A DNA stretch of 64,000 nt. Origin: Macrostomum lignano. Taxonomy: Eukaryota. The position numbers and the translations under genes were made by a program. The notes beneath the pieces are model-generated. The model was not told the origin of the DNA. It saw nothing but the letters and a program-made list of their open reading frames with translations, and did not search any database. The stretch spans positions 62,001-126,000 of the forward strand of contig NIVC01001449.1 of assembly GCA_002269645.1 (NCBI GenBank), given 5' to 3'. Below, one piece after another: positions 3,238-53,685 of this stretch; the first letter of the stretch is position 1; each line of letters opens with the position of its first letter.

Positions 3238-3284
3238 TAATCTCCTCGAAATCAGGAGCATTACACCTTTTTGTGTTCTATTTC

Positions 3285-6727: not shown

Positions 6728-6996
6728 AGTTTTAAACAACAATTATCTTGAGTAAATCCATATGTAAGCTCGTATGTGAAAGTGATGCTTTACAAATTAA
6801 TCGCGTAAAAAGTTCATTCAAGCTCGATCACATGCTGATATGCAGAAATGGGTGAGATGATTTCCCATTCGAAAAAAATCCTTAGTAATCACTGCTATAC
6901 TATATAAGCCTATCAATTAAGTGTCTAAAATAGACTTTTCAGTTGAAAAATTACCGAATTAAAAAGAGTCATTAGCCTAAAGGGCTTCAAAAGTTA

Positions 6997-28100: not shown

Positions 28101-31100
28101 CCACACGTTTTACTCGTACTTTGCTAAGCTGCTTCACTTGCTATACAAGCTGCCGTAGTACCTGATAATAAGCGGGTCATTACTGGCACAGCGCCGCTAA
28201 GATTATATTTTCGAGGGAATAGGCACTGCCTCCAACGATAATCCGATATTTTTTTCAAATATCGGGCGCTTTCATAAGACATGAATTGCATATCGCCTGA
28301 ATTTCATAACACTTAAAGCAGAAAATGCAGCCTCACTTAAATCACCTAAATTTCATATCGCCTAAATTTCACAACGCCTAAATATCTGCGTTCTCTTTCG
28401 TTGTGAACTTTATTTTTCTGCTGCCAATCAAAGTTGAAGTTTAAAGTTAATTACCCCCCGCCCCCTATGTAGAGCAGTAGGCTGGCTAAGTGCTCTCAAC
28501 CGGGTGCACAGGTGCACCAAGTTCCGGCTACCACAATATAAAAATAACGTCTAACTGTCATCAAAATTATTCTAAGTGACCATGTAGAACAAGTGCTACC
28601 AAAGAGATTTACCAATTTACCAATATACTTACTTATCCAACAGTCTGGTGGTATCGTTTGCTAGTCCGCTTGCAATAAGCTCAAAGCGGTGGCCGTCCAC
28701 GACTTTAAACTGACCGGAATCTGCATCTACAGAAAGGCAAAAGAAATGCCACCAGTAGCTGCCCTTGAAGTATCCAGAAATTTTCATTTGTTCGCCAGAC
28801 TGTCTCAACACGGTGGCTTCATATGAGGTGGCGGTGAGCACGCGGAAAGTCAAACTCTGCCCGGAGGATGTCAGCACAGGACGAGTGTAGTCAGTGGCAC
28901 CCGGCTCCACGTAAAGGTAAAAGCAAACTGAGTAGCCTTTGCCACCGGAAGTTTGCAGCACTCGTCCGAAGGCTGGCACCTGCAGTGTGGCGCCGACAAG
29001 CAGCTGAAGAGAGGCATTTTCACGATAAGTTGGCCCGTAGGTCCATCGGTACTGGCCGCTGTCGCTGCTGATGTTGCCGTGCAGCTGGTTGGCTGAGACA
29101 TCGTTTGCCATTGTCTCGTTCACCAGAGGCCAGAAACCGATGCGGTAGTCTTGGAGCTGCACTGTCTGGCCGGCCGGGTCTGCACGTGCGAATTGAGCTT
29201 AATCAACAGACAACAAACAAACAAACAAGCTAGCAATCTAACTAACGAACTTCTAAAAGTTACCAAAACAAAACGGTATCTAAAAGTGCCTCCGAATTTA
29301 GCAGCGTGGTTTACAAAAAGGGGCAGTCTTTAGAAATTTAGCCTCAGATTAGCAGTATAAAAGCATAGCACTATAATCGTAATTACTGAGAAGTTCTCGA
29401 GAAATAAATTTGGCGTTACTTTTCGGTCAGTTTACAAACATAATTGCATTGATTTTATGATTATCTCGCGCGAACTTATGACCTACGCTATTGTGCCATT
29501 GTCCGGTGTTCTCCGTAGAATATTAGTATACCCTAAATCATTCAATACGAGTAGCTCTTTCTGTAATTAAAATCATTATCTCGTGCAGCTACACTATACT
29601 CACCCCAAGCCGTCACGCTGTACGAAGCCGAGTTGGCTGTATAAGGAAAATACTCCGTGCTGGAAGTAATCGTAGAGCTCAGAATGCCTGACACACCCTT
29701 GACTAAATCAATGTCACAGCTGGAGTCTGAAGCGGTAAAGTTTTTTTTTAAAACGTAAAGTTATATTCCATGATGTTTACCAGTTATGAAAAACTCAGAT
29801 GCAGGTTAAAAGGTTAAAAGCATTACGATGCTCACTGTACGGCAGCCATTGCATCATGATGCTGGGAGTTGTAGTGACAGTCGCGGCCATAGAAAGTCCG
29901 GCAATAAAATGGGTCTTATTGAGATCACTAAACTTAGACGTCGCCTCGTAATACGGGAAAACTGATTTGCAACTGGGCGCCAGATCGGTATAGCAGTCGT
30001 AGACCTGGCCCATTTGGTTCACTAACGGGTACTTCTTCATGTAGTTTTTGTCGTCTGAATAAATCATTCTCTTCACGTAGATCTTTCCGGCTGGTGTTGA
30101 CGCTTGCTTGACATCTAGAATAGAGTAAAGCTACAAGCATGAAGGTTCTTATAGGACGAACTTTGATTAAACTTACCAGGATCACTGCCTAATATTGCGG
30201 GAGGAAGTCCTTAGATTGTTCAAAAATTTTTAGTACGGGCTTGATAGCTTGATTTTTCTATTTTTTGCATGGCAATATAGTCAGTTTTCTACCATTTGGA
30301 CTTCCGAAGAGCTTTGGAAGCCAGTAAACTTCATGGTATGAGTTTTAAAAAAGTTTTCAACAACTTTAATTTGGAAAATCACTACAAGGATGTACAATAA
30401 GCAAAGTGTGAGTAAATTACATTATATATTTCTATCACCCTTATGTTGCTATTTTTAAACATACGTTGCAATTATGTTGCCATTGAGTAGTCCCTGACCA
30501 AACTTTAGACAAAATATCTGAGATTATTTGGTCTGGACCACAGATACTAAATACCCTAGCTGGTTCACTCAGCACAATCTTTATGTGTCAGTTTTGACTT
30601 GCTACTCTCTGTCCAGTGGCATAAGCGCATGTTCGCTCTATTTTTGTCTTGACAAAATATTTGGAGAAAATGATGGGCTAGCTGCTCGTGTCACACACCC
30701 ACAACTTTGCCGCTTTAAATTCTTATATCTATGGCCAAGCTTGGCAGTGGATCAAAATTCTCAGGCGTAAAACCCACTGTTAAAATCTGCCCCTCACCGC
30801 AAAAAGCGTAGAGTCTTGGCCATAGACAGCCGAAGAAATCGACTAATTTTGTTTTTAGCTAGCAGACAAGTGGGACAAAATACGGGAATTTAAATGAATG
30901 AGGCAGGATGGAGAAAAGAAAGATTTTAACTTCGCCCTTTGTTTGCTAAATCAAACCAGCAACTCTTCGTGAAATCCTCACCAGACTACAAGCATGGAAT
31001 TCAGCTCAAAGCGCTGCTGTGCAGCCACCTGCACCCATACAGCGCAATCTCTTACGGATGAGGGAGTGGCTGTGCGAATGCACAGGCTTCCAGCGGACGA

Positions 31101-34100
31101 CGGAGTTGCGAATAGATGGCACCAAATGCTGGAAGTCGACTTGGACATCGGAGTCATTCGCAAGATGGGATTGCGAGTGCGTAGTGTGCATTTTACTGAC
31201 AATGATTACAGCTGTCCTTTACGACATGAAGATATCACACGTTTACGATGGAATGCTGTTCCAGACAGGGAGCTGACTCTACCCCGTCTCATTGCACATG
31301 ACCTGACACATTTGGTTGTTCGCAGTGACGAAGAGGCTGACAATCTATCCACCTGAACTGCAGTGTTTCAACAGCACTGATGGTTAGCCACCACAGGCCA
31401 CAGAGTAGCAGGCAAATGTCAGCAGCAAACAGCTCAACCAACCGAGGTCATGCTGAACAACGAAGCAATGACATCATCGCTCAGCTGCGCAGCAAAGTCG
31501 TTTGATGCAGCAGAAGGTCAGGCGGGATGTTTGCAGCCGTGGCATGCACTGGACCAAGGCGGACATTGCATGTTCAATTCAGCTGCATCACAAAGGCTCG
31601 TCAGCTTACCGACTGGTCCGCAATAAGTGGGAGATGCCGCTACCATCGAAGTCGACAATTAGGCGGCGAATTCGATAGTATTTCGTATTGCCTGGGATTT
31701 GCAACTTGACGATGCGATCGATCCTTGCTGTCAAAGTTTGATGTATCATCGACCATGACTCAACGTGCCGCAACTGTGCAGACGACAACTGCGAGGCTGC
31801 CACCCACCGGTGCCGGAGACTGCGTGACTACCAAAGCGAGTCCATCGAACTCAAGCAGTTTTAAACGCCAGGCACCACAGCAGCAGCTGCTTGAAGAAAG
31901 GCTGGACTCCTGTCAGGATGCAAGCAATGCCTCGCTACAAACTGCAGAGTACGTTGGCGGGTATGTGCTAAAGCGAATTCGAGTTCCTTACTGTCAGCTG
32001 TGCAACTCTTTGCTTACAACATCCGTACCTGTGGGGCTTCAAATCCAGCACAAGACCTACTCGTATGCATCTCGCGGGTTAACTGCGTCCTCGCCGCTGG
32101 CGCTTGTTCCATTAATGAAGATGGAGGCTGCGTTTACAGCCCTGACACCCGGCTTCATAATCCAGCCACGTGTGGCAGCTCCGTTCGTGGAACACCTCCG
32201 GGCGCAATTAGCGAGCTGCATCACACACGGGTTCTCAATCAAGTTTTTTAAACTGGTGCCCTCGTGAAATGACAAATCTGTTTGCAGTGGCTCAGAAAAA
32301 GAAAATCATGCGCAAGATTAGCAAGCTAAACTGACTTTGTCACACTAATATAGCTCAAGAACACGATTTTCTTATATTTTGCGGTAAATATATTTTCTGT
32401 GTATTATAAATATTTGCCCATTTTTATGTTCTTTTTTTCTCCCTTGCAATGCACAAAAATATTCTTGAATGTTTGCTAAATCAAGAAAAATAATCATCAC
32501 CAAGTATACCAGTAGCACTATAAGTTTGACTTTCGATTGTGTAGACAACGTCAATTATTTGTGCTTTAGCCTAAGCCGTCACAGCTAGTTGAATAAATAA
32601 ATGTTGCTTTTTACGATCATACTACCGAACAGAGAGTAGTTTTGCTAAATATAGTCGAGTGAGCCATCTAGGGTATTTAGTATCTGTGGTCTGGACAGGA
32701 CGAATCCTTGATAACTAAAACTAAATGACAAAAATTATGTTTAAATTGTCAGTAAAAATTTAGTCAAAAAACTGCTGGGACTATTTCCTATGGAAAATTC
32801 TTACCTCTTTTTTAGTTGTGATTTTCGAAGTGAATTGCACCATAAAAAAAACTTAATAATTTGCTATCAGTGATCCTGGTATACCACAAGTCATTGGGTC
32901 TCTCTGAGGCACAAGCGCATATATTATGCAATTCATAGTACATTTTTTTGCATAGACGGCCACTTCAGCCATAACGAATGTGGAAGTCTGCGGCTTCCTA
33001 ACAATAACGAACTGAGCAGGTATGTCGCAGAAAGCTTCGAGAATGTCGCCGGGCTGGTTATCCATGTTGTCCAGCTGGCACCTGATCGAGTTTGGCATGT
33101 CCGATTCGTAGTTCGCTTCATTTGCCAGCGACACCCAGACTTGGTGCTCGTTAGGGTAGTCTGTCAATCAAAATTGAATTTTAAAGAATATTATTTGCAT
33201 GCTTAGCCATCCAATAATTTAGGTCAGTATGATATGCACATTTCTCTGCGACAAAAGACAGTTTTTAAAGACCGGTTCAAATTACCGCCAGCAGCTCCAT
33301 GGATCTCTGATAACTTAAATTTAAAATTGGTCTGTACCTTCTCTGCATCATCTGCTGCGTCATAGATCTTATATACACTTGTGTGTATAATATAATAATG
33401 CTCTACATTAATAAGAGTATACTTGTACGACAGCAGTGGCAGTGGCACACTTACAGGTGTACGTTTGGAGCGGTGTTACAGAAAGTATATGCATTTGACA
33501 GTGTGCATCCAGTCAAACAAAAATGCAATTATGTTTTCACAATCTGCTTTTTCCTTTGAGTTCAAGAAAATGCTCAAAATTGTTAAAAACGGTTGAATTT
33601 TTTGTCCCGATGCACTCCCTGCTACTAAATTGCTTTCTGGATGAAGTTAATTCCCTAACCATTGAAATGTACGAGTAGCTATCTACCCTAATTGTTTCCA
33701 CTGTTAGGCCTTCACTCTAAAGTTATAGCTGATTTTTGACTGGGAAATAGTCACAAATTAATATTTACATTTGATACTAACACAAGCTCTTTCACTACCT
33801 GTATTTATAACCAAATGATATTTTCTTCTTTATTATCATAAATATATCCTGGCGATGGCAGAAGAATGCCGAAACTAGTCCACTATTGATTTTCAACATG
33901 CTGTTCTTCAGTTCTGTTTCAGCAATACTATTGAATCGTATTGATAGCAAAACAGAATAACACTCTTAAGGTACTTAAAGGTTCTTAGGAACTGGTCAGA
34001 TATAAGTGTGACTTGCCTCCCGACTGCTTTCTGGTGTACAACCAGACTTCGCTAACGTGCCAAACAGCTTGCATGTCTACTCTCCACCACTGCATCACCG

Positions 34101-37100
34101 AGCCATATACGTATTTTATGGAGAAGCCACTTGCTACGGCAAAGTCTGCAGCAAACACGCCGTCGTTTGCCCCAGTAACGACACTGCTCGCCTCCACCTC
34201 TCCGCTGTGGTTCACCGGCTTCCCAACAATGTCGACTGGCTCCGAGACCAGAGTGTAGTTTGTGTTGAGGGAACTGACCTGGAGTTGAGTAAAGGTATTC
34301 TTCATGAATTGCAAAGATTATCATTTTCTAATGACTGAGTTCGCAGTTTATGAAAAATTTGAGTAGCAAAGTTACTGAAAACATGGATCTTGATAAAGAA
34401 ATTCCATTGTAGGTAAGCCCATCAACCAAGTAATAGGTGTGCTTGCCTCGCAAATGAACGGATATGCCGATTGGTATGTGTCGCACTCGATGTTGAGCCA
34501 CGCACCACCACTTCTCAGGTCCATCATCAGGCAATGATTTCCTGGCTTGCTGAACCTCCAGAACTTCCACTCGATAGGCGAGCCGTCGAACCACTGCCAC
34601 TGGTCCGCCGTACGGTTGTACCGCCCGTCGATGTGCAGCTTTTGGTAAGCGGGATTGGAGCTGAAATTCATACGAGCGTAATTTAATCATACGGCTTGTT
34701 TAACGAGGCTTTGTGATCAATAAATCGAGCGATTGTGTCCAGTTGCCAATTTGAAACTTAAGTTTTAGCCTATTTCAAAATTCTCAACAGACTGGCATTG
34801 GTAATTGGTCTCGAAGATTAAAGAGACTCAAAGCCAGATGCCATTTCAAAATTTTATCTTGGTGGCCTGCAAAAAATGTACTTTTATGTTATTGATACAA
34901 TGCTGATGACTAAAACATAGCCATTACCCTGAGAATGAATGATTCCAGGACAGGTAGTAAAACAGTTGATTCTCAATGATGCTCTTCGGAGTAGCCAGGT
35001 GCCCGCTGCCGTTCCAGTGCATTGACTCGCAAATCTCCTTGGCCAGTTTCGGCGGGGCCAGGGTGTGCGGCATGGTGTTGTTCCGTCCGTATGAAATCCA
35101 ATAGCAGCTCATTCCGTGCCTGATGAAGCCGATAGGACACTCTGCAGTTGTTGAAAGTGTGACAATTGTGAATGGAAATTTGTTATGTTCTCTTCTTCTG
35201 CTTCTATACCGACTATTGCCTCCAGGCTACCATCTGACATCAAAGTCAAGTCGAAGAAGCTTTCTTGACTAGTCTTCTATGCCAACATATCAAATGTATC
35301 TCGTATCTCGTATCCGTTCCCGACGGCTTGGACCGAAATCGTGCCATAGACATTTTTGCGCTCCACGACGAGACTGATGGCACGGTTTCGTGCCAAGCCA
35401 GCAAAACCGCACCCAACTGACGATTATTTAGTTTATGTTTGCACCACCTTTCGCGTAGATAGCACCACAGATACTATAAACACTAGATAGGCCACTCAGG
35501 CTAATTTTCTGGGCAAGTTTTTTATTCTACTTTCTGCTTAGTAGCAATGAAAGGAAGCAACAGTATTATTTGCTAAATTAGACAAATCGAGTGACTGTTT
35601 TTAAGACATCGTTTTGCTAACGCCATAAACAACTAACTTGTTTTGTGCAGTAATGGTGTACATTAAGACGCGACAGACAGTGTGCAATGCCGCTATCTTT
35701 CAAAGTGGAGGAAGGGGGGTAGTCTGGAATAGGGTTAATATCAGTTTCGTATAAGGCAGGGTGAGTGGATCGATAATTTAGGCCTACTGGTGGTGGGATA
35801 GAAAATAAAGGACTGCACATAGCTAGCCTGGGTTAGGGGTGGGGTGGGGGTTGAGAGGTTGTGGGTTAGAAAATTTGGGGGTGGCGAATCGTGCTTAAAT
35901 ACAAGCTTATATAGATGAACAGGACAAGAGTCAGAGTTAAAGAAAGTTCGAGTGCATACTAGCTTTTCTATCTAATCTTGTACTCGAGAAATGTTTTGAT
36001 TCGAACCACTGCTGTGCTCCCACTTGCACGAGCTTTGTACTAGTGCTATTAACATCCGAGAAAGAAAAATCCGTTGCGAATGCATAAATTACCAAAAGAT
36101 GACACTGGCGAAGCGCTGGCAGCAGCTACTACAGGAGCGTGGATATTGATCTTTATAAACAATTAAATCACGGGGCCTCCGTGTGTTCAGCTTGCACTTT
36201 ATGGACGAGGCCTACTGCTGCCTTACAAAGTGCCACGGATGTGCAAGACATCTGTTTTCGCTGGGACGCAATCCCACACCAAGAGTTGATGCTGCCTCGG
36301 CTCGTTCAAATAGACCAGCTACCCTCTGTGCAAAGGACTGATAAACGATGAAGAGGCAGACGACATGTACCCTCCAGTGCTGGGGCCAATTAGCAATCTA
36401 TCTGCAGCCGAGCCTGCGACTTGCCTGCTGCCAGTGCTGTGGCAGAGCAACCTTCGGCTACCAGATTCTGCGCCGAGAACAGCTGTTGCGGCTGAAAGCT
36501 CTCACCTCTGCAGCCGATTCGCGGGTTCCAAGCGCTAGAGGCAAAGATCAAGCGGCTGCAGCAACGATCCCGAAAGTGACAGGCGAATCAAGCGGCTGCA
36601 GCGGCAATCCCGAAAGTGACAGGCGAATCAAGCGGCTGCAGCGGCAATCCCGAAAGCGACAGGCAAATCAAGCGGCTGCAGCGGCAATCCCGAAAGCGAC
36701 AGGCAAATCAAGCGGCTGCAGCGGCAATCCCGAAAGCGACAGGCAAATCAAGCGGCTGCAGCGGCAATCCCGAAAGCGACAGGCAAATCAAGCGGCTGCA
36801 GCGGCAACTCTCGATGGTCAAGGCAAGTGCAGCGCAGTCGTGCATCCATGGACTGTGGAGGCGTGGCTAGCGCAGCTTCCAGCGGTCGACTGGGCGGCAG
36901 GGCGCTCGCAGTCAGGGGTGCTCTGGTCAAAGGATGTCATCTCATCAGCAGCTCATTGCAGCTGCACCACAAAAGTCCTGCTGCTTATCGGCTGCCTGTT
37001 ACGAAACCACTGAGGATTGGCTCCATCGGATACATCCCTGGACCTTGAAGTGGCGCATTCGCCAGTTTTTTTCATCTGTTGGGCCGTTCTGAATGCTGCC

Positions 37101-40100
37101 TCTGAACAAGGGCGACTGGCGACCCTGTTCTTCGACAGCACGCTGCGAGTTTCACAAACAGATGAGCTGATTAAGATGAGAAATCTTTCTATTTTGCTTC
37201 ACGAATATGGATTATGGAGTATATGATATAGCTCGTATTTGCTAAATATACAATAGTAGACTGCAATAATATAGCCTTCTATGCAATCTAAAGCATTCAC
37301 AATGTTGCTTTGAATTGTGGAAAGTATAATTATAAGTTTCTTTTTGCAAAAAATCAATACAATTGCTGCATTGCATTCATCTGTTTTTTATTTTAAAAAA
37401 ATATAAATAACGCTAAAATGTTTTTACTACTACTAAGCAGAAAGTAGAGTAAACTGTCGTGTTGTGAAAATTAGCTGGAGTGGCCTATCTAGTGTTTATA
37501 GTATCTGTGGATAGCACAGCCATTGCAGACTGATATGGACCGTTTTCGTGCCATGGCTTTTGTTGAAAGACAAAAATCTTTTTTTAACAGATAGAGCAGA
37601 ACATAATTGGGAATTGTGTATATTTGATAAAAAGAACATGTGGACTGATGTGAACGTGCGTTGATGGACCTGATATACCGGTGTTGTAACAGTATTACTG
37701 TTCGAGAGTTCGAAAGAATGCAATAAAGTGTGTGAAACTAATGAAAGAAATAACAACTATAAAAACAACCCGCGAACCATAATATAAGCTATGCACATTA
37801 TCCTGAAAAATACAGAAAAAGCTTACAAAAGATTCAGGAACATAAGCATTACAACATCTGGATTCAGCTCTTCATAGTCGCTCAGAGACTCGTCATCGGT
37901 AACTATTGGGGACTCCGTCGCGTCGTCGGTCTCCCAATCAGACTCAGCGCTCATGATCTCGTAATTTATACTACTCGTACGCTCGTCCAAGAACAACGCT
38001 GCTAGCAATACAATGCTATAAAACTTAAACAAAGAACTTAAGCAAGTTTGACTGCACCGGTGGGAACACTGGAACACTAGGGCTGTGTCTCAAAATCTAC
38101 TTGGCAAAGACTGCGTGAAAAGTTGCTTCAGTCTGGAAGGGGTTTGTATACGAGCTTAAAAACTTGAGCTAAAAAAATTCTATGGCACGATATCGAACCA
38201 AGCCGTCGGGAACGGATGTGTTGGCATAGTAGGCTAGTCAGGAAAAGGGTTTGACTGCTCTAATCCACCGGTCTGAGCCAGGCGTCAGTCGGGGGCGGTT
38301 TTGCTGGCTTGGCACGAAATCGTGCCATCAGTCTCATCGTGGTTTAAATACGAGCTGTTCACTAGCTTTATTTGCCTCTAGCCGGCGCACGTCTTGCTTG
38401 CCTTTTTGTAATACTGTTAGCCTTCGGCTCTTAAAGAAATAAAAGATTGTACCCTAGACTATAGACGAAGAATGGAAGAAGGGAAGAAGGGAAGCATTAG
38501 TGCATTTGCTAAACCAAAAGTCCATACACAACATTCCCCCTTTGTCAATTAATATCTCACAGGTCCGGTTTCTGCAATTTGTCTCTGTCCCTCAGTCGTC
38601 TAGGTTCTTTAGCCGATGTGTCAGTGCTCTTGCCAAGAGTTCCGTCTGAGTCGGTTTTCTGTGGTTCGTCTTGCACGGGCACGCTTTGGGCTGCTGGATT
38701 TGAGATGTCCTCACTCTGCATTTGCTCACGAGCCAAGTCAGTCTGATCGTCCTGATGCCTCTTCATGATTGGTGGAATTCGGGTGGGAAGAACGTCTGTC
38801 TTGACAATTTGATCAACGTGCCTCTTCCAGATTTGACCGTTGACCTGCAGTCTGTAAGACATTGGTCCTGTGCGGGTGACCACCTCGGCAGGAATCCATC
38901 TGTTCTCTTTCTCCCTTCTGAAATCCAGCGTCAGAACTTTTTCTCCCTCCTGGAACTCCCTCGGCGACGCTCCTCTATGGCTTTGTCGTTCGGTCACATC
39001 AGTCTGCTTATCCAGTACTTTTGAGTAGGTGTCCGGCCTAAGAAAGTCCAATTGAGTCCGGCGCTTGTAGCACAGCATCATTTCAGCTGGCGTCCTACCA
39101 GTTGTAGAGTGAGGTGTACTTCTGTATCTGAACAAGAAGTTCTGCATACTCAGTATTGGGTCTCCATGCGTTTTGATTCCGGCTTTAATAGCAGACTTCG
39201 CAGTCTGGACCATCCTTTCGCTAAGTCCATTAGTACGCGGATGTCCAACAGCCGTTAAAATTTGACGAATATTATTTCGCTTCAAAAACGCACGAAACTC
39301 AGATGAGCAGAACTGACTGCCGTTATCACTTAAGACTTGCTGAGGAATTCCGAACCTTGTGAAAGTATCTCGCAGGCACTCAATTGTCTTACTTGTAGTC
39401 GCATGTTTCATAGGAAAAATCTCGACCTATTTGCTAGTTGCGTCGACAATGATAAGCCAGAAATATCCGTGAAATGGTCCCATGTAGTCCATCTGGATTC
39501 TTGTCCATGGCTGCTCTGGCCAAACAAGAGGTTGTACAGGTGCCTGTGCAGGTAAATTTCTTTGCAACTGGCAACCTTCACAGCTTCGGACTAGGTCTTC
39601 GATGGCACTATCGATTCCAGGAAACCAAACATGCAGCCTAGCGATAGACTTCATAGCAACTATTCCAGGGTGTCCGTCGTGAAGCAACTCCAAAACCATT
39701 CGTTGCACACTCCTTGGAATAACGACGCGCAGTCCCCAGAAAATCACTCCTTGCTCGATACAAAGCTCATTTTTTTTACGAAAATACTGTTCCAAACCTG
39801 GCTCACTTGTTTCTGGCCAGCCGTTTTGGCAGTAGTGAACGACTTTTCGAAGTTCTGCGTCCTTCCGTGTCGCGGTTCTAATCGTCTCTGCCGTGATCGG
39901 TAGCATCTCAAGCCTGACTTCCAGAATTTTGTCACATGAGATGTTCTTGGCTCGATCTGGTAAGCGTGAAAGCGCGTCCGCATTTGAATGGTCCTCTGTC
40001 CTTCGAAATTTGATTGTGTATTGGTGGGCGGACAGAAGTACGGCCCAACGCTGAAGACGACTTGCTGCGATGCTAGGGATATCCTTTTTGTCTCCAAAGA

Positions 40101-43100
40101 TGGTTAGGAGCGGCTTATGGTCCGTCACAAGCACGAAATGATGTCCAAACAGGTACTGGTGGAACCTTTTTACTCCGAATACTATGGCCAGCGCTTCCTT
40201 CTCCAACTGCGAGTAGTTAATCTCCGGCTTTGATAGCGTCCTCGAAGCATAGGCAACTGGCCTTTCATCACCATTCGGCATCACGTGCGAGATGACACAT
40301 CCGATTCCATACTTTGAAGCATCCGTTTGTAGAACGAGCTGCTTCTTCGGATCGAAATGCGCTAGCACTCGGTCAGATGTCAGCGTTTTCTTCACTCTGT
40401 CAAATGCAGCGTTGCACTCCTCACTCCAGTGAAACTCCGATTCCTTGCACAACAGTCGATTGAGCGGTACCAGAATCGACGACAGATTCGGGATGAACTT
40501 CGCGTAGTAGGTTATCATTCCAATTAGAGAGCGAACTTCGGTTGCATTTGTTGGTGCCGGTGCATTGTGAATTGCCTCAACTTTCTCGTTTGATGGGTGA
40601 AGTCCATTTTCGTCAATAACGTATCCGAGGAATGCAATCTTGTTGAGACGAATTTCACACTTCTTTCTGTTTAAATGCACGCCATAATCTGAAAGGTGCT
40701 CCAACACAGCGTTCAACCTATTATCGTGGTCTTCCAGACTGGTTCCAGACACCAGAATATCATCTATGTATACAACGACGTCCAGGCCCTGCAGTATTTT
40801 CTCCATGGCCTCCTGAAACTGAGCCGGTGCGGATGCCAGTCCCATTGTGAGTCGGTTATAATGAAACAGACCGAGATGAGTGTTGATAGTGGTGAACCTT
40901 CTACAGGATTCTTCCAACTCAAGCTGCAGGAATGCTTGCGAGATGTCCAGTTTGGTAAAATATTTCCCGCCATTTAATGTTGCAAAAATTTCTTCTGGTC
41001 GTGGCAGAGGATACTTGTCGACCTCTAATTGTGGATTGACTGTCCTTTTAAAGTCAGCGCAAATTATCACTGATTTTCCATCGCGCTTGAGAACAGGAAC
41101 GATTGGCAATGCGAAATCCGATGCCTTCACCTTCGTGATGATTCCTTGGGCTTGCAAACTCTTTGAGCTCGTCCTCAATGAGACCCTTGATTGCAAATGG
41201 AACTGGCCGACTTTTGAAATACTTTGGTATTGAATTCTCCTTCAGCACTATATTGGCCTTCAATCCTTTAATGGTTCCCAATGTCTCAGCAAACACTTGC
41301 TCATGCCTCCTTACCAATAGATCCAATAGGCTGGACTAATGTGGTCACGTTCACACTCGCAAACTTGTCCCAGTCAATCTTGATCTTAGAAAGCCAGTCG
41401 CGTCCAAGCAGATTTACTCGTTCTCCTTTGACAATCAGTACAGGCAATTGGTAACGCCGGACGTTGTGGCTAACCACGTCGATTGTTGCTTCACCTAATA
41501 CTGGGATTGAGTGATCCGTGTAGCTGGACAACCTTACGGTAGTCCTTGAAAGCTTCAGGCCTAGTTGCTTGCTGGTGTCGTTGATCAGGGTTTTATCCGC
41601 ACCAGTATCCACTTGAAATCTTACAGCTTTTCCGTTCAGTTCCAGTTCGCACTCGTATGGTGGAGAAGTGACATGCGCGACCTGTCCAGTCGAGCACACT
41701 GTCCTGACTTCAAAGCACTCCCTGTGGTGTCCCTGACTCGTACAGTTTGAGTCCCTGCTGTGTGAGCTGGTTGAACTAGCTTGTCCTGTGCATAGTGCAC
41801 TCTGCCGTGTCTCTTATGTCTGGACGAGCTGAGTTTCTTTTGCTTTCCACCTCCGGAATCTTTAGTCCTGTCCTTTGTGCGGCAGGCATCACTTTTATGT
41901 CCCACTCGACCGCACTTGCTGCACGTCTTGCTACGGTAGGGGCAGTTCTTTGCCCAGTGATCTTGTGCATTGCAGCGGAAGCATCCAGATTGATTGTTTC
42001 TGTTGTTCTTCTCTGACAAGCCGTCTGTCAGATTTTTACTGGCTCTCGAAGACTTCACCGCCTGGATTGCACCGGTTGACGAAATTGTCACCACACCTCT
42101 TTCCGCTGCTTCCATCGCAGTCGCAAGGGTAAGTGCTCCAGTTAGTGTCAGTGTGTCTTCTTGCAACAGACGCTGCTGTGTCAGGCGATTCCTTAGGCCG
42201 ACAACGAACCTGTCTCTCAGTGCCTCGTCCAAGAATTCATTAAAACCACACGTGGCAGCCAACTTCCGCAGACTTGCGATGAAATCGCTCACATTTTCTC
42301 CTTCATGTTGGGCTCTGCTGTGGAAGTTGAATCTCTCGACAACGATCTTAGGCCTTGGGTTAAAATGCTCCCTCAGGGCCTTGACTTGATCGTCGAAGTT
42401 CACATCCTTGGGCTTCTTTGGTGACAGCAGGTTGCGGAGCAATTGATAGCAGTCATTACCAATCACTGTAATCAGATTTGCTCGCTTATGTGCCTCCTCG
42501 GTCACTTTGTTTACGACGAAAAACTGCTCGAGTCGTTCTTCATAAGCTTCCCATTGCTCCGGTTTAGCCACGTCGAACTCTCCGATTTTTACACTCCTCG
42601 CCATTGTTATGTCCTCTTCTTCTGCTTCTATACCGACTATTGCCTCCAGGCTACCATCTGACATCAAAGTCAAGTCGAAGAAGCATTATTTAAAATACGA
42701 GCTGTTCACAAGCTTTATTTGCCTCTAGCTAGCGCACGTCTTGCTTGCCTTTTTGTAATACTGTTAGCCTTCGGCTCTTAAAGAAATAAAAGATTGTACC
42801 CTAGACTATAGACAAAAGAAGGGAAGCATTAGTGCATTTGCTAAACCAAAAGTCCATACGAGCGTACACAACAAAATTGAAGCGTCCGCACCATTGCCGG
42901 AGGCATGTCTCTTGCAACGACTAGTTCTATTAAGAAGATGCAACGTTTATATTATTACTGAGAGATAGTGTCTTCAAGTTTATTGCCGCTGAAAAAATAC
43001 ATTGAATTATTCCGATTACATGTACGTTTAGCAACCAATGGTTTTTGATCGCAGACGAACTTTTAATACCTACCGATATACTCGTATGCCCCTGGTATAC

Positions 43101-46100
43101 TTTCTGCAAAAATTTACCTCTATATTGAGGTAAGGGAGCACGCTTTAGAAGGCAAAGAAATATAAAAGAGAAAATCAACATAGATTATATTCTTTCGACG
43201 CGTTTCGGTCCAACTAGAGCCATCTTCAGGTCTGGTGTATTTTTAGTCACACAACAACTTTTATAAGAGATAAGTGAACAAATGTTTACTGTACAGTCCG
43301 TAAATTCTTCCGTAAATTCTTTAACACGCCTATTAAGATAGTTTTCCACACTGCTAAGGTCGGCCAATACGTTAGTAGACTGAAATCCCATGTTCCTCTT
43401 GCTCTGGCAACAGGTGTTTGTGTATAAGTTCTCTTGTTCTGTTGACCAGAACATTACCTATATAGGTAAAACTAAAAGGCACTTGTACACCAGAGTCAGA
43501 GAGCATTGGTTGAAAAGGTCGGCTATCCAAGACCACCTGCTCTGTTGCAACAGTTGCTGCGAAATTGAGCAAACTCAGCAGTTCAAATTTATTGATCGGT
43601 GTAGGACTGACTTTAGGCTTAATATACTTGAATCCATGTACATTAAAAACCAAAAACCAAATCTGAATATTCAGCTCTCCCATAGTGGTGCGGGCCATTT
43701 GCTCAAGGTGTTCCAAGTGAAGGCACAAACCTGAACAATGTACTCGTAATCTCTGCTCAACTTTGAAAATTCTGCCCATGATATGCCCCTTGGACTGTAC
43801 AGTAAACATTTGTTCGCTTATCTCTTAAAAAAGTTGTTGTGTGACTAAAAATACACCAGACCTGAAGATGGCCCTAGTTGGACCGAAACGCGTCGAAAGA
43901 ATATAATCTATGTTGATTTTCACTTTTATATTTCTTTACCTCTATATTATCCCTTTAGCGACACCCTGCTGGAGATAGGATGATTAGGAAAACCTGTAAT
44001 TTTACTTGCTTACTGATAACACAAATGAACCAGTAAAGTTGAGTACTCGCAATACACTTCGACCAAAAGTGTCACAAAGTAGCTGACTGGATTAAAAGAA
44101 GCCGACTAATAAAAATCAACAATAGCCTCAGTAACCCCGAAATTCATACCCTCTTTGATGATGCAACCGCGGAACTGAAACTGGCTCGCCGCTGCAGACC
44201 CGTTGAGCAGCAGGACTCGCAGCTCATTCGAACGAATCAAATGCGGCAAAGGCTGGTCGGCGCCATTCTTTGAATCAAAAATCTAAAATTTCATATATTT
44301 TGTGAACTAAATCTGGCGTCAAGCCAAGTTAGCTCATATTAGACCTAGGAACCATGGCAGTTGATGCGCGAAATCAGTTACCGTGTCGGTGCCAAACACT
44401 GTAAAGTTGACAAACGTCCAGTTTTGCAGTGTCTTAAACTGCAACAAAAACTTCACTCCATCGCTGACAGACAATGCAAGACCCGTGATGTGGTAGAATT
44501 CCGTGAACTCAAAACTTATCACAGTTGGTGAGATGCTGCTGGCCGTCATTTCACTAGTCGGGATTAGCTCGCAGTCTAAAATTTGAATTAAAAAATCTTT
44601 GCTGCTAACTAAAGTCACAGAACTTTTTGTGTGCGTCTGAATAACACAGCAAATTCTTACCGTCGGGGTAGCCGAGTAGCTCCAGTTTCATCACCCGATT
44701 CCCGATAAAGTTAGTGTCTGGCGGCGTGAACTGAACAATCTTGGCTTTGATTGGCACTGGCAGGTCCATTCGAATCGGCGTGTTGTCATTGGCGAAGTCG
44801 TTGAATTTGTGCTACAAAAAAGTGGAGTTCTCTTAATTAGTTTTCTTGTTTTCTATAGAAGATAGTAACTATAATGGTCGATTAACCTCAATAAAATCTG
44901 CCTTCAACTTACAACATTTAATGTATTCGACATCTGATATGATGTCACAGGTATCAAGGCTCTGTGGTGATCACCGTATGACAGAGTAAAAGACCTCACG
45001 TAAGCGAACCAAGCTCGTGTCAAATCCATTGTGGACGAGCCCTGCACGACAACGCCTAAGATCGTGTGCCTCGTTATCAAGTAAATATTTACGGAGAAAA
45101 CTGGAAATTGAAAAGATTTAACGGGGCTGCGTGAACGCGCTTATATTGTTGTTACACATTGACTACTCTTAATGCAAAATAGTAGCTACTCACCGTGGGT
45201 AAAAAACATGCCGGGAGGCTGCAGTGGCTTCTGCGGAGAGTTCAGTCGCAGCATGTAGGGCGAAGGATGCGTGGTTGGCTGTATAGAGTAGCCACTGAAG
45301 TTATGGAACTGAACGTCAAGCTGATTGACTCCGATTATTCCCTCCTCGATGCCAACAGGATTTCCAATCAAGTGTTTCGGGCCTGTGGGATTTTTAAAAC
45401 ATGGCTTGAACAGGGGCAGCTTTAACAAGGTCGCATCCAGTGGCACTCCTAATAAAAGTACGCGTTAGTTTATATAGAAACATGATCTCCTTCATTTCTT
45501 CGTTATCAAAATGAAATTCGACCTGCAGCCAGTGAAGGGGCCAATAGTTATGTACGTTTAGTTGAATTTAAGCACATGCATCGGATATATAAGTACGTTT
45601 CGTTTCTATTTTGACCATTATATGCAGAAATGATGATTCATTATGATAGAAAAAGTGAAATGCGACGCCTATTTTTCCATGCAGCCACAATTTGACAGGG
45701 TAGCATAAACTGTCTGTCTGCTGAAGTGAAATATTTTATAATGTTAGTGTCCTTGGTCTTCTGGACTCTCACTACTGCTGCGGCTCTACAATAATTTCTA
45801 TTATTAATGTGAGAGCCAAATAACTGGGGCGGCGGATTCGACTAAACTTTTCCTGATGATGCAATCAGGAAATATTAACTCACAGACCGTTTAATTAAAT
45901 GTTCACAATATCAGAATGTTGTCTTACAAAGAAAAACAATATGAAAGGATGTTCCAAATAAGAAGCTCGACTAGCTCAAGTTGTAAGGAGGGGATTAGTT
46001 ATCCTTTAATTTTAGTTTGATTAGATTCGTGTATTCTCTGTTGAAGTCAAAAGCAAAGCAAGGGCATAGGAGGAGCAAGGAGAAGAGCAAGGAAACGGGC

Positions 46101-49100
46101 AAAAGGTGAGCAAAAGGCGAAAGGCGCAAAAGGGTGGCGAAGACGAGCTTCTTGTGTGGTTTAAAAAAAGTTTTATATAGATTTTCTGGTCTTTCCAATT
46201 GAGGAATATTTTAGATGGTACATGAATAGTGTTCATTGACTGAGGCTCGAGTCGTATCCTCAACTTTTTGCTTGTTTGAGCGCATTGATTGTCTGGTAAT
46301 ACCTTTAAACTGGATGGAATTTTTTTTTATTAGAGGCAGGGGGTTGTGTGCACCCTGGCGCACTTCAAGCGACATTGTCACACAACCGGCGAGAGGCATT
46401 ACTGCCCATTTCGCCGACTCCCCTGAGCAGGCATACAAGCGCGCGGATACGTACGCAGGCACCACAGACCAAGAAATATAACTAGACTGCGCATCCCGCA
46501 TTTCTTGCTTGGGCTTGTTTTTGACCAAATGACAGTGGAAAAAATGGTCCCTCTCTCCCTACTCGAAAACGATCGATAATTGTGCTTGGGCAAGAAGTTA
46601 GGGTACAGGCCTGCTTTTCTTTCCGCCTGCGTTGATATGTAGCTATATATTAAAGTGGTCTGGGGCCAAAAATATAAACTTATAAAACACATACTTGAAA
46701 TACAAAGCAAGCTGCTTCAGTCTAATCTAAATCAATCCTCACCAAATCGAACTGCCATGGAAGAATCTAATTCTTCAAAACTGCCTAGCAGAAAAAGTCA
46801 CGGCAGCTTTTGCTGCGCTCTAGGCTGCTCGAACAACTCGTCAATGTCTCCGGCAGTGTCCTTCCATTTTTTTCCAAAAGACACTGAAATGAAGAGAAAG
46901 TGGCTGGTTGCGCTCCGACGCAAGGAGTTCAAACCATCGGCGACCACCCAAGTCTGCTCGGTCCACTTTGCAGAGTCTTGCTTCAAGGAACAACTAGCCG
47001 GCTTTCTGCCCACCACAAGAAGGCGGCTGTATCCAAATGCTGTTCCTTCTATCTTCCCGACGCTCCCTGACCGCCTGCAGCCTGTTGAAAAGAAGCGAAA
47101 AACAGCCACCGCCGCCGCCGCTGCTCAGGAAGTTGACTTTGCTGCATTTTTGAAAGCGCCGGAATGTAGCAAGACGAAGGCTCAGCCAACTGACACGGAG
47201 GCAGATGAACCAGAACAACCCCTACAAGAACTGCATGCCAACTGTGTGGCCAGAGAACTATTCGAAGAAAAGGTGAGAGTCCTAAAAAACCTGAGGCGCA
47301 GATACAAAAGGCTTTTGGCTGCTCATAAGAGATCTAAGAAAAGTGCTAAGGCCATTGAAATCCTGCGTCGGACGGTACAGAGCAAGTACAGAAAAATTCG
47401 ATCTCTGCGCTCAAAGCACAGGCAAATTAAACATAGAGCCAAAACATTGAAGGACGCAATTCTGGATCTAAAGGCCAAGTGCATGTTAAACGAAGCAGCG
47501 GCATCTCGATTGAATTTCTTGACCTCCGATTCACTGCTGAGCAGCATCGTGCCTTGCAATAGAAAAAGGACAAAGAGGTTCTCTGACGAAGTGCGCAAAT
47601 TCGCCTCTACATTGCATTTCTATAGTCTGAAGGCTTATGAGTATGTACGAAAGTACTTTCAGCTTCCACATCCTGCGTCACTTAGAAAATGGCTCTCAAA
47701 TGCAAAGTGCTTTCCAGGGTTTTGCGATCAGGCTTTCCAGGAACTTTCGCGGCGACGCAGCTCCACTGACGGCCAAGCCTTTGACTACTGCAACGTTGTT
47801 GCTGATGAAATGTCGCTAGAGTCGATGATTGAATGGAATTCAAGCGAAGGTATGTTTTTTGGCTACGTTGACAAAGGTGATGGCAAACCAAGTGATCAGG
47901 AGGCGTCTTCGGCACTGGTAGTGATGGCAGTGGGGCTTAAGAGCTATTGGAAGCTGCCTTTAGGGTATTTTCTAGTGAATGGAGTTGACGGCGAATTTCT
48001 TTCGAGCGTTGTAGAGGAATCCATTCAGCGACTGTACCAGGTTGGCGTCATAGCAACATCATTCACATGCGATGGAACTCAGCACAACATTCGAGCGATC
48101 GAACTCCTTGGCTCCAGGATAAGTTCTCCGAACGAGGTCATCGCCTGCTTCCCGCACCCCTGCGATCCTAGCATTCAGGTTGCAGCCTTCCTGGATGTGC
48201 CTCACATGTTAAAGCTGATTCGCAATCAGTGGCAGTCACTGGGAAGATTTGTTTGGCCGAACAGAGGAAATATTGAATGGAAATATGTTTCCATGTTGCA
48301 GCAAGTACAAGAAAGTCATGGACTCCGACTTGGAAACAAGTTAAGCAGGCATCACATCAACTTTGCTAATTTAAAGATGAAGGTCTATTTGGCATCACAA
48401 CTGTTTAGCAAGTCAGTGGCCGACTCTTTGCGATGGGTGCATCAGCAAGGTGTGATCGGATTTGAGCACTCTGATGTGCTAGTCACCGCAGATTTCGTTG
48501 AGCACATGAATGATTTGTTCGACGCTTTCAATTCCAAGCGGCTGGTCAGTTATGGCGCCAAAATGGCGCTTAGAGCTGACAATCAGTCGGATTGGATCGA
48601 TTTCTTCTCTAGCTCGATCGAACTTCTCCGTAGCCTTGAAACTCCGGCTGGCTGTAAGATAGTAGAAACCGCAAAGAAGACTGGCTTCCTAGGCTTCATC
48701 ACCAACTGCCATGGCATTATGGAGCTCGCTAAGTATTTATTTTCGACTGGCGAATTCTTCTTTCTTTGCACTTACAAGCTTTCGCAGGATTTTCTCGAAC
48801 TGTTTTTTAATGCAGTAAGGCTACGAAATGGCTGGAACCATAACCCAACGCCCACGCAATTTCGCTCAGCATTCAGGCAGCTGTTGGTGCATGCCGGAGG
48901 TGGAATTCTACAGTCCGTGAGTCCGAATGTGAGGCAGCAGGATGCCACTATTCAGTTATCATTGTCTTGTCTGCCATCATCATCAGGACAGCAGCCATGG
49001 AAGCAGATGAAAGCTCAAAATGAAATGGGACTGAGTCTGGGTTCAATCCAACACTGCAAGAATGCATCGGTGTGTGAAATTTGCCAGTCCATCGTGTGCT

Positions 49101-52100
49101 ATATCGCAGGCGCGGTCGTCCGAAGAATGATGAAAGCAGTTGAATGTGCTCCGTGCAGGTCAGCTCTGATCGCAAGCTCTGAGACGCCAGGAGCTTCACG
49201 CGGACCATGCTCACTCGTTGCCATAAAAATGTTTTGAACAAGGAAGGAACTGGCGGCCTGATTTTTCCTAGCAGCAATGTCCTGCGGGTGCTGCTCAATG
49301 CAGAGACTGTTGTTCAGCGTGCCAGCTACAGCAGCGGATTCTCTAGTGATGTAGCTGTTCAGGAGATTCTGCGCATGTCAATCGATCTGTTCCCTGAACT
49401 GGACTCTCATTCGGCATCCGCGAGTATCAGCATTGAGTCTCACAAGCTGCATTTGATTCGAGTAATGGCTATGCTTTTTATAAATATTCGAATGAAGAAG
49501 CTGGCTAAGGATCTTTCACGCGCTAGAAGAAAACCCGGCAAGAGGCAAAGGCTGCTTCGAACATCGATTTTTCTTAATTTGTAATCAGCGTATCCGAATA
49601 TGGAAGCTGGTAAGTTATGGCTTCAATGGATTCTGTTTAAGCTTATTCCCGTGATAAACTATATATTTGCCATTAAATGCGTGCAAAAAAATTCTAGATA
49701 AATTAAAAATGAATCTGTAGTTGTTGATTTGTTAATCCTATTTCTTACTGAGTCTGAATTTTCACTAGTTACGAACATAAAAAAAAAGAGACCCCGACAA
49801 GCTGAGTTGGCTGAGGGTAAGAAGAAAGGCCCGGGCACAATTATCGATCGTGGGGGAGTGGGCACTGGGGTGCCACTTTTCCTACTAGGAAAAAGGCACA
49901 ACTTTTTTTACCCTCATGCGCAGTCTAGTTATATTTCTTGGTCTGTGGCAGGCACACACTCACACAGGAGTGTACAGCGGCCCTAACTTTATTTATCGTT
50001 AGGCATGTACACTTCACTGCGCCTTGGGGGGTTGGCCCTCAAGGCCGTTAATTGCACGAGCAGAGCCAAGCCGAGATTCCAATTCAGCCCCAAATTAATG
50101 TGACTGCACTTGGAATCGAGCCTGGGTCGCTGGCACACCAGAGCAGCTGCGCTACCGCTGGGCTACGGCCCCCCTTAAACTTTATGGAAAATTTCAGGGC
50201 CAAATTTATCACTTCAGTAGTAATGACTAGCCATTTAGCCCCCCGCTGGGGGGCTTTAAAATGACACCTAGTGGTTTTTATTTTGGCCCAACAGTAACCA
50301 TTAATTTTCATTTCCATTAATAAAAAGTTACTTTTTCTCATTTTGAAAAAAAATAAAATTGCTTTCAAGCACAAACTCTTAGTGCATATCGTCATTGGCC
50401 TGGGCATATTCTGGTCCGCAGCAGGAGCTCAATATGCCAATCCCTGACGGCCTCTTTATTAGCCTAACTCAAAGAATCAAATCTTTAATAAATACGCTGG
50501 TATTTCCTATCAGCAGAATTCAGCGTCACTTGTGTGTACTATTTTATTATCTGAATTAAATGAACTACTTGAGCCGTACTACTTGACGATCTGACAATCG
50601 CTCAACAACCTAACCCCCCCCCCAACAATTCAGCCATCTCCCATAAGCCTTGATATCTCAACAATTCAGCCATCCCCATGAGCCTTGACATCTCAGCAAT
50701 TCCCCCAGTAAGCCTTGACATCTCAGCAATTCCCCCAGTAAGCCTTGACATCTCAGCAATTCCCCCAGTAAGCCTTGACATCTCAGCAATTCCCCCAGTA
50801 AGCCTTGACATCTCAGCAATTACCCCAGTACTGGTAAGCCTTGATATCTGAGCAATTCCCATGAGCCTTGAAATCTCAGAAATTACCCCAAAAAGCCATG
50901 ACATCTCAGCAATTCAACCAATAAGCCTTGAAATCTCAGCAATTCCTGAGATGTCTCCACAACAACCTGAAATTATCCCTTCCAATCCCAAAAAACAGGC
51001 TTCAGTCATACTCTAGCGGCCTAGAATTGTCCCCACAGCAAACAATAATTTACTCAGTAGTCCACACTTACTACCTCAGCAGTTTGCAGCTATACACTCA
51101 TAAGTCTGGAGCAAAAATCATATCATTGCTTCTGAATATGGTCTGGAGAAACTCCGTCTGCACATCTCACATCTTTACATCTATGTTATGATCCTCCAGA
51201 CAATATGATCTATATGAACTACCTTAGCAGTTTTCAGTTTGTCCCCTCAGCAGTCTGCAGTTCTCCTCTCGGCCCACTCCTCAGAATCCTCAGCAAACTG
51301 AAATAAAGGATCCTTTTAAGAATCAGAATTTTTCTCATCATTTATTATGGTTCACTAAATCAATTTTCGATACATATCGGCAGTTTTTTCACAATTCAGC
51401 CTTCATTTTAACTATAAATTTAGCAGCATAGCACTTTGATACTTTCATGGATCTAGGCAATACCCATTGATGCGATGAGTAATACTCACGCCGCCACTGA
51501 GCATTATTTTCCTCTCCCTTGCTGCATCCAGTACTGAGGCCTACTACTCACAATGAAGAGAGAAAAGTTGTGGCGCAATCTTAATTGGAATTGCTATTCA
51601 GTTAGTCAAGATTTTGACCTTTTCTAGCCTCCCATTGAAAGCATTGGGAAAACTCGTTTTTCGAATATTTAACCATCTTCCCATTCGAATTTTTCAATGC
51701 AATTAGATCCGCACAATCTCACAAAAATTTGCAATTGAATAAAGCAAGTTTGAAAAAAATCGGTTCAGGCATTCAGGCTGTAGACTGAAATACCGGTCAA
51801 ACCTGAGAGATTTAGTATATTGGTGATGATGATGAATGTTGACTCTACACCGAGCCTGGTTTATGGGTTACCAAACTAATAAATTACTCACTAGCAGCAG
51901 GAAAGCCGAACACTTCGAACTCGGGCAGGTAGATGGGGCGCCGATAGTAGGTCAGCTTCCTGATTCCAGCGTACCGAGCAACCTGAATTTCAACAAAGCT
52001 AGCTTTATTTTCATTTCAATTTTGCTATGACTTTTACTCAAACTAGCCTGAACGATTTAACGGCGGCCTAGAAAAATCACTCGGATGTCTAAACTGATGC

Positions 52101-53685
52101 ACAATAACTTCTAAAACGAATCATAAGTATTCATACCTGATTGATAGATGGTACCATCCAGTATCGCTCCTTTGGGGGACCAACGGTATGTCTGCTGACC
52201 ACCTTTACTGCAGGACTCTCGACGGCAGAGCTATTCGAAATGAATATTTCTGAGTGATCCAAATATTCGTAATCTGAAATCAATAGTATTTTAGTTAGTT
52301 GTTGTTATCTTTAAGTATCCAAAAATGCATTCTACATCTTGAAAGTTTTTTGACAAAACACAGCAGAACAATTAGGGCAGTAAGAAACCATTTATGATTA
52401 AATCACCGGAAGCCGATACAATGAAGATACGAGCGTAATTTGTTCTACGGAGCATGGATGAAGGAATATATTATTCTGCTCATATGCGGACTACTCGTAT
52501 AAGTCGTAGAAACAACCAATGACGAGCAGAGCCATGCCTAGTCAAGTTGCCAATATTTTAACAAGCGTTAGGAAATATGGACAAAGCTATTGCTACACAA
52601 CAATTAAAACCGTGAGTACCTGCATTCGTTCAGTTTTCTACCACTAGGGTTGATGCAGATAAAGATTTATAAGACTTGAAAACCAGTTAATCCATGTATA
52701 ATAGAAGCACAGGGTTTAGGGTTTACAGTCAATTTGTGGCAGGCAAATTGCAGTAGTCAGTTGCAGACGCCACGGTTTGGAACACCCCAAGTTTAGATGA
52801 ACCTATGACCACGGATAAACAATTCTTATATTCCAGCACCCTCGCCACCCAGCTGTGTGTTTCTGATTGCTCTGATTGATTGTCTGTACAAACCGTAGTG
52901 CATTGACTGCCTGTTGCAGGGCAGCACCTCACAGGCCTGAAACGGCACAGTCGGGTCCATTGTGTAGCAGTAGTAAAAATCTTTGCTCTCGCAATTGCGA
53001 CAATAGTTTCTAGAGCGGTTCTTGGCGCCATCTCCTGGAAAGTTTGCATCAAGCTGGCACTGGTAGGGTATGGTGTGCGGTCCGGAGCTGCTCCAGTTCT
53101 GGCAGGCCAGGCCTCCTACGGTTACATTCTGCAAGCCATAGTAGTTCTTGTAGGACACAGTGCCGCATACGTCATGGCCGTAACCAGCTAAAATTCATCA
53201 AGGATAAGTTTTATGTACATTTGGAATGGCGCTGCTCAATTTTGGGGCACTAAATTGACTACTTATTCAAATTTTAAATTCCATAATAGCAAATTAAACC
53301 TTTGCTTGTTCCATATGAGTACTATGTTGAGCGAAGTATGTGAAGGTAAAATGTAAAAATGCTATGCCAGACATGTAAGCGGAAAAATGAAAGTACTCTC
53401 CGAGGCATTTTTAATCAATTATTATAAAAATATTGTAACAGGAATCTATGATTCGAATTTGATTCGATATGATTCGATTTGATTCGATATGATTCGATTT
53501 GATTCGATATGATTCGATTTGATTCGATATGATTCGATTTGATTACGAATAATAAGCCATAAAGCAATTTACAGAAGCAAAAAACCTACAATAAATTTGG
53601 TTTTTAAATCACTTTGCCAGGATACCTTTACACTCTTAAATTGTAAAAACCCACGTGCTGATAGGGCCCTTTTGTACACACACGT

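Follow-up and report, generated by a model that had tools for sequence, protein, structure and literature searches.

The 64,000-nucleotide stretch of Macrostomum lignano DNA analysed here (contig NIVC01001449.1, positions 62,001 to 126,000; its full length is called the window below) carries on its minus strand a Ty3/gypsy (Metaviridae-type) long terminal repeat (LTR) retrotransposon whose two LTRs are told apart by an 8-bp indel between TA dinucleotides, very probably the footprint left by a departed DNA transposon. The 5′ LTR (42605-42873, minus strand) is uninterrupted, 269 bp long and has TG...CA ends. The 3′ LTR spans 35181-38533 overall and is interrupted by an insertion of about 3.1 kb, which separates a piece adjoining the polypurine tract (38343-38533, minus strand) from an outer piece (35181-35260, minus strand). 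Relative to the 5′ LTR the inner piece shows four substitutions and two indels, one of 15 bp within a short tandem stretch and the one of 8 bp, and the outer piece shows one substitution; with the pieces compared apart the divergence is about 5 substitutions in about 256 aligned bases (~2%). A 5-bp target-site duplication, AAATT, is present on both sides (35176-35180 and 42874-42878, unstranded). A sequence like a primer-binding site (TGGCGAGGAGTG, 42592-42603, minus strand) lies one base inward of the 5′ LTR, and the polypurine tract (AAAGGGGGAA, 38534-38543, minus strand) abuts the 3′ LTR. Between the LTRs, searches with Pfam on the minus strand placed gag first, followed by protease, reverse transcriptase (RT), RNase H and integrase. 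The gag region (41636-42673, minus strand; Retrotrans_gag and a zinc knuckle) is a single open frame, and pol (38557-41699, minus strand), when set against four homologues, has two frameshifts and an in-frame stop, which marks this copy as decayed. The proteins most similar to it are K02A2.6-like gypsy polyproteins from animals (47-53% identity). From the target-site duplication, the primer-binding-like site, the polypurine tract and the domain order it follows that both repeats belong to a single element as its LTRs, as the sequence-only reading that preceded this work had proposed, and its labelling of the 5′ and 3′ LTRs is right for an element on the minus strand.

An 8-bp difference between two LTRs of one element

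At 42857-42866 (plus strand) the 5′ LTR contains TACGAGCGTA, in the context ...aaaagtccaTACGAGCGTAcacaacaaaattg, and so reads cca-TA-CGAGCG-TA-cacaaca. The twin 3′ LTR, ...aaaagtccaTAcacaacattcccc, reads cca-TA-cacaaca, with a single unoccupied TA in the same LTR column (38525-38526, unstranded). The earlier reading had described just this pair of sequences and the letters and the alignment both bear it out, although its position for the twin, 38521-38533, starts one base early: the sequence concerned, ccatacacaaca, lies at 38522-38533. In the LTR alignment the two copies are identical over the 44 nt preceding the site and the 7 nt following it, so the difference is a clean gain or loss of 8 bp between TA repeats. 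Both LTRs of a retrotransposon are copied from one template at reverse transcription. As had been argued from the sequence alone, the 8-bp difference must then have arisen after integration.

The position of the indel coincides exactly with a word that is enriched in the window, as the earlier reading had noted. TACGAGCGTA is present in six copies in the 64 kb with unrelated flanks, where 0.08 are expected, and none of 100 shuffled sequences reached six. The other five copies lie at 5971-5980 on the minus strand and at 6686-6695, 26506-26515, 34671-34680 and 52428-52437 on the plus strand. Local templating of the 8 bp by TACGAGCTG, which lies in the LTR itself at 42696, was considered, but the recurrence of the 10-mer at five unrelated loci led us to reject it.

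A second internal control in the nested insertion

The insertion that splits the 3′ LTR (35261-38342, unstranded, ~3.1 kb, the left bound uncertain by about 6 bp) is composite, being a non-autonomous element bearing terminal inverted repeats (TIRs) that itself hosts a non-autonomous P-superfamily element (35466-37509, unstranded; 8-bp target duplication GATAGCAC). The arms of the outer element lie at 35261-35422 and 38166-38245, with a displaced arm segment at 38283-38342. Its left arm contains the repeat that the earlier reading called A (35297-35312, TATCTCGTATCTCGTA), and TA-bounded TCTCG insertions were said to separate this from its partner A′. In a comparison by eye the left arm (35261-35330) was set against 38166-38250 in reverse complement. 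Where the right arm has ...GCCAACA-CA-TCCGTT..., the left arm has ...GCCAACA-TA-TCAAATG-TA-TCTCG-TA-TCTCG-TA-TCCGTT...; the insertions are as described. The surplus of the left arm amounts to 23 bases (35290-35312), parsed as TCAAATG-TA, TCTCG-TA and TCTCG-TA, within a compound of TA-bounded words on the plus strand at 35288-35312 (TA-TCAAATG-TA-TCTCG-TA-TCTCG-TA). The counterpart site in the right arm is a single dinucleotide without insert (38217-38218, unstranded), CA on the strand of the arm and TG on the plus strand. This is a second paralogue pair, with three TA-bounded units in one member and a single (C/T)A in the other, and TCTCG is the complement of CGAGA.

The outer element (35261-35465 and 37518-38342) has long hairpin-rich inverted arms and a rearranged right end: the segment 38283-38342 is an inverted copy of 35363-35422, yet lies outside the arm at 38166-38245 rather than inside it. 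No clear target duplication was found for this element; at the point of interruption the intact LTR has ATTATTTAAAA and the interrupted LTR TTT...TTTAAA. The P-superfamily element within it contains a 40-bp tandem repeat array at 36507-36866.

Enrichment, distribution and age of the TA-bounded words

TACGAGTA/TACTCGTA and a further word, the palindrome TACATGTA, are the most over-represented 8-mers of the window, ranking above words from tandem repeats. TACGAG occurs at 49 sites against 18.6 expected, and in 36 of the 49 a TA closes the word within 0-3 nt. The letters enclosed at these 36 closed sites are CGAG (21), CGAGCG (6), CGAGC (3), CGAGCT (2), CGAGA (2), CGAGT (1) and CGAGCAG (1), the fifth base being C in 12 of the 15 longer cases. 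TACGAGTA and its complement TACTCGTA together account for 21 copies in the 64 kb (1.1 expected), and on the plus strand both orientations are present without bias, nine as TACGAGTA and 12 as TACTCGTA. The ratio of observed to expected CpG is 0.89, which is no depletion and does not create such words. Sites of this class lie on the plus strand at 5784-5791, 23993-24000, 26760-26767, 27480-27487, 27520-27527, 29546-29553, 33670-33677 and 53905-53912, and on the minus strand at 1265-1272, 4968-4975, 14174-14181, 23915-23922, 24068-24075, 28111-28118, 32058-32065, 43079-43086, 43741-43748 and 52492-52499. The one at 32058-32065 is within a P-like element, that at 43741-43748 (TACTCGTA on the plus strand) within an element with a GIY-YIG nuclease frame, and that at 14174-14181 is in frame within a 152-aa open frame with an REJ domain, the reading frame of which a 6-bp scar would keep. 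Variants were found as TACGAGCTTA at 6765-6774 (minus strand) and 38149-38158 (plus strand, within the nested insertion), and as TACGAGCTA at 37229-37237 and 55483-55491 (both minus strand).

TACATGTA occurs at 13 sites, which counted on both strands is 26 against 1.8 expected; these start at 485, 788, 1542, 1565, 5428, 9826, 20800, 24615, 26913, 27304, 43017, 56520 and 59736. It is probably the scar of a second, Tc1-like family with CA...TG ends. TATCAAATGTA was tried as a further class and rejected, there being five matches with at most one mismatch where 1.7 are expected, a number reached by 3 of 100 shuffles.

In several places words adjoin and share a TA (at 9820, 23373, 35288 and 37972, all on the plus strand). 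At 9820-9833 the two most enriched words adjoin in TA-CGAG-TA-CATG-TA, TACGAGTA at 9820 running directly into TACATGTA at 9826 through a common TA; at 23373-23387 the compound is TA-CGAGC-TA-CTCG-TA, and at 37972-37987 it is TA-CTCG-TA-CGCTCG-TC, in which the final TA has decayed by one base. Such compounds would be expected were each scar to offer new TA targets, or were insertion local.

Open reading frames (ORFs) of at least 200 aa hold 16% of the TA dinucleotides, yet none of the 36 CGAG-type words and none of the 13 CATG-type words lies inside one; for the 36 CGAG-type words this exclusion has P ~0.002. The 36 words lie in about 48 kb of non-ORF DNA, a density of about 0.75 per kb, or one per 1.3 kb, which corresponds to about 1% of TA sites. 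They are clustered, with 12 CGAG-type sites within 23.1-29.6 kb and none within 44-52 kb, a stretch that includes a young-looking P element. Derivatives of TACGAGTA with one mismatch number 40 against about 33 expected, an excess of about 7 beside the 21 intact copies. Because such derivatives are barely in excess of expectation, most of the scars appear to be young, about as old as the LTR pair.

A probable Minos-type excision footprint

What has been described above, namely the two paralogue pairs, the enrichment of the words, their compounds, their two orientations and their exclusion from long ORFs, together with the agreement of the letters with a published terminus of Minos, a Tc1-family transposon, is observed directly. 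The opening letters of a published primer on the Minos inverted repeat, TACGAGCC..., consist of TA and then CGAGCC (PMC3680223). The scar letters match TA+CGAGC of this primer and the series CGAG, CGAGC, CGAGCG and CGAGCT is internally consistent, the donor itself not having been found. We therefore regard it as highly likely that the extra eight bases are the excision footprint of a Tc1/mariner (Minos-type) cut-and-paste transposon acquired after integration, and 42857-42866 would then consist of six transposon-end bases and a duplicated TA.

The sequence of events would be as follows. Once the Ty3/gypsy-type element was in place, its two LTRs still identical, a transposon with termini starting CGAG(C), from a family that exists in the genome now or did so formerly, would have inserted at, and duplicated, a TA that lies eight bases in from the outer margin of the 5′ LTR. 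On later excision the cut of the transposase in the non-transferred strand would have fallen a few bases within the transposon, leaving each flank with TA and a short 3′ overhang of transposon-end bases, and end-joining would have closed the break. Two CGAG overhangs paired over their full length would give two matched end pairs and two central mismatches, and both orientations are expected because such a mismatched duplex may be resolved either way, to TA-CGAG-TA or TA-CTCG-TA (the common class, 21 sites). TA-CGAG-TA amounts to TA, four end bases and TA, a gain of 6 bp. The class to which the LTR word belongs (six sites) could arise from one full overhang and the last two bases of the other, giving CGAGCG or CGCTCG. 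In the original work on Minos the footprint was reportedly explained by pairing of four-base overhangs and mismatch repair, which would give both orientations.

We looked for a donor within the window. Scoring all TACGAG...CTCGTA pairs within 8 kb for terminal inverted repeats gave no value above 16/30, and among the 25 longest of 54 inverted-repeat pairs none starts with CGAG. At 58505-59478 there is a TA-flanked element of about 970 bp with TIRs, its ends reading CTTCGGGTGTGTCA...; this is a Tc1/mariner-like miniature inverted-repeat transposable element and not the source of the CGAG scars. From its presence it can be said that the Tc1/mariner superfamily lives in this genome.

Weighing the alternatives

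Several points weigh against an excision footprint of this type. No element with inverted ends of the form TA|CGAG...CTCG|TA is present within the 64-kb window, and no Tc1/mariner transposase domain was found by Pfam in the approximately 70 open frames of the window that were scanned. The scar density, at about 1% of TA sites, is above that of any germline genome known to us. The flanks of the scars are asymmetric, with A at −1 in 20/35, A at +2 in 18/35 and T at +3 in 20/35 against a background of about 30%, a bias that a model with a symmetric TA target does not predict. The six-base product requires a register in which the four-base overhangs have no Watson-Crick overlap, which is plausible for end-joining. 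Finally, no other LTR copy of the family, from which the ancestral state of the LTR column could be read, was found in the collections searched. There are no further LTR copies in the window; a protein search with the RT/RNase H frame gave no relative above 53% identity; an exact 19-mer of the LTR matched by chance in three places and nowhere else, all of them bacterial genes for membrane proteins on metagenome contigs; and an LTR 28-mer and the RT protein had no match in viral contigs. With no other copies to compare, the polarity of the change is inferred rather than demonstrated.

It is this last gap that leaves room for the parent element having had the word in its LTR beforehand, for example as an earlier scar that reverse transcription copied into both LTRs, with the 3′ LTR having then lost exactly CGAGCGTA by deletion between TA repeats. 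A 2-bp direct repeat can mediate deletion, and the TACGAGC string that both LTRs share, at 42696 and 38349, means that CGAG-type words can be ancestral in the family. Such a history nevertheless calls for two uncommon steps, the master copy first acquiring a scar and a base-exact deletion then removing it, and in the second paralogue pair the comparison of arms A and A′ would need three more precise losses. Gain by contrast asks for little, since scars are frequent: from a density of about 0.75 per kb, about 0.4 new ones are expected in an LTR pair of about 0.54 kb. Parsimony therefore argues strongly for a gain of the word in the 5′ LTR over its loss from the 3′ LTR, and we think the ancestral presence of the word very unlikely. 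That the difference is a chance indel or an assembly or sequencing artefact has no specific support, and six identical 10-mers against 0.08 expected (0/100 shuffles), with an indel that is exactly the enriched word, make it scarcely credible.

The remaining alternatives concern what the words are. They could be functional motifs, for example protein-binding sites, kept or spread by selection, in which case TACGAGTA, TACGAGCGTA and TACATGTA would owe their abundance to use rather than to excision. Their avoidance of long ORFs fits this, and TACATGTA has been read as a binding site in Phytophthora promoters (PMC3520976; see also PMC11134190). Selection on a motif cannot, however, account for TA-duplicating insertions between paralogues inside dead transposons, and it leaves unexplained the head-to-tail compounds with a shared TA, the graded series CGAG, CGAGC, CGAGCG, CGAGCT and the identity of letters with a known transposon terminus; we rate it a shade lower even than ancestral presence. 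No better placed is a host-directed or otherwise unusual TA-specific cut-and-rejoin process, such as a domesticated transposase that imprecisely removes TA-bounded insertions. The very high density of scars, the lack of a donor in 64 kb and the youthful look of the scars (about 21 intact copies, with one-mismatch derivatives exceeding expectation by about 7) would suit it, but nothing in the window requires it, ordinary Tc1/mariner activity yields the same products and 64 kb is too small for the donor of a low-copy family to be expected there. A bolder view in which the window records a recent and near-complete purge of a Minos-like Tc1 family, through a host-driven, transposase-derived system that imprecisely removes TA-bounded insertions from an animal germline, or through a distinctive mode of end-joining that reproducibly yields CGAGCG beside the four-base product, seems to us very improbable. 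Excision of a Minos-type transposon by the ordinary route is thus the explanation that we prefer.

Neighbouring elements and genes

A P-superfamily transposon that appears to be young lies at 46463-49947. Its target duplication is 8 bp long (GCAGGCAC), its perfect TIRs, starting CACAGACC, extend over about 32 nt, and an 860-aa frame free of interruptions encodes a THAP9-like transposase (THAP, Tnp_P_element, TNP-like RNase H and GTP-binding domains), with a THAP9_C piece in a further frame; there are no CGAG or CATG scars inside it. Two P-like elements with related TIRs (CACAGATAC...) are the one at 30539-32688, which has an 8-bp target duplication, GTCTGGAC, and retains a THAP-domain frame, and the one in the nested insertion already described. 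The GIY-YIG nuclease frame mentioned above (43150-43941; Pfam E 1.2e-5) lies between 150-nt inverted arms that are 97% complementary and is possibly a fragment of a Penelope-like or related element. At 2466-3241 a perfect 270-nt inverted repeat with a 236-nt spacer, and within it a perfect 47-nt pair, forms a foldback-type structure.

A large gene, polycystin-1/REJ-like (7217-20075, minus strand), consists of a few long frames (PKD, REJ, Polycystin_dom and PKD_channel), including one of 1354 aa, and has a fibrinogen-C frame upstream of it. The 1354-aa PKD/REJ frame had no protein match at E≤1e-20 and the sole match of the polycystin channel frame was a tapeworm protein at 34% identity. The lack of a close homologue suggests that the host lineage is poorly sampled or that the gene is fast-evolving. 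The domains in the window are of animal type (PKD/REJ/polycystin, fibrinogen C, kringle, F5/8C and C-type lectin), and the window contains no Rfam families and no tRNAs.

Significance and comparison with known systems

The LTR pair supplies a built-in comparison of before and after, by which the most over-represented words of the window would be understood as scars of departed DNA transposons and not as regulatory motifs. Scars of this kind can pass for conserved motifs in k-mer and motif scans, and they record past cut-and-paste activity that repeat annotation misses, since the elements themselves are gone. When dated by LTR divergence they also allow the rate of insertion and excision to be set against that of substitution, here about one scar per five substitutions between the two LTR copies. 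Should the same density extend across the genome, such scars would contribute substantially to the small insertions of the host animal. The scars are unusually dense for animal DNA.

No relevant literature was found on the scar words themselves, apart from TACATGTA. This palindromic 8-mer is abundant upstream of Phytophthora genes, where it was judged to be a binding site and not a footprint (PMC3520976), and a later paper (PMC11134190) reports a Myb-related factor for it. The Phytophthora promoter motif and the word found here have the same letters and are both abundant in non-coding DNA, but the former is read as a transcription-factor site in an oomycete whereas the latter is in an animal and in one copy is fused to a CGAG scar through a shared TA. 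The internal eliminated sequences of Paramecium are likewise TA-bounded and Tc1/mariner-related, and they are removed by a transposase-derived enzyme with non-homologous end-joining (NHEJ; PMC3408717 and PMC3464196). The product here differs in being imprecise and in lying in the assembled genome of an animal host. Excision in Paramecium, a ciliate, is precise and somatic and leaves one TA. For Stowaway/mariner elements of plants, small TA duplications with end bases at excision sites were recognized by genome comparison (PMC4561436 and PMC4423477); detection in those studies was across species and the density much lower, whereas here it came from k-mer enrichment and paralogues within one genome.

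Footprints of Tc1/mariner elements in general consist of 2-4 nt from the start or the end of the element with TA on either side, and the scars of Sleeping Beauty are TACAGTA or TACTGTA (PMC6943129). The route in Sleeping Beauty and Tc1, in which cleavage of the non-transferred strand a few bases within the element leaves 3′ overhangs and NHEJ repairs the break, is that proposed here, although their ends are CAG or CA..TG rather than CGAG and 2-3 bases are kept rather than 4-6. The footprint of Tc1 in Caenorhabditis elegans, taCATGta (as cited in PMC3520976), is TACATGTA, the second enriched class of the window with its 13 sites. The nearest match is Minos of Drosophila hydei. The reported footprint of Minos is 6 bp (PMC10992017), and as here the target is TA, the scar consists of terminal bases and the duplicated TA, 6 bp is the length of CGAG with TA, and the end primer matches both CGAG and the frequent fifth base C. 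It should be noted that the window yielded neither a Minos-like element nor, in the open frames scanned, a transposase of that kind, and that the density is far above that reported for Minos. An 8-bp class of scar, with six end bases and TA, is to our knowledge not described for Minos. The mechanism is itself already known, and it is the density of the scars and the internal control that the LTR pair provides which stand out.

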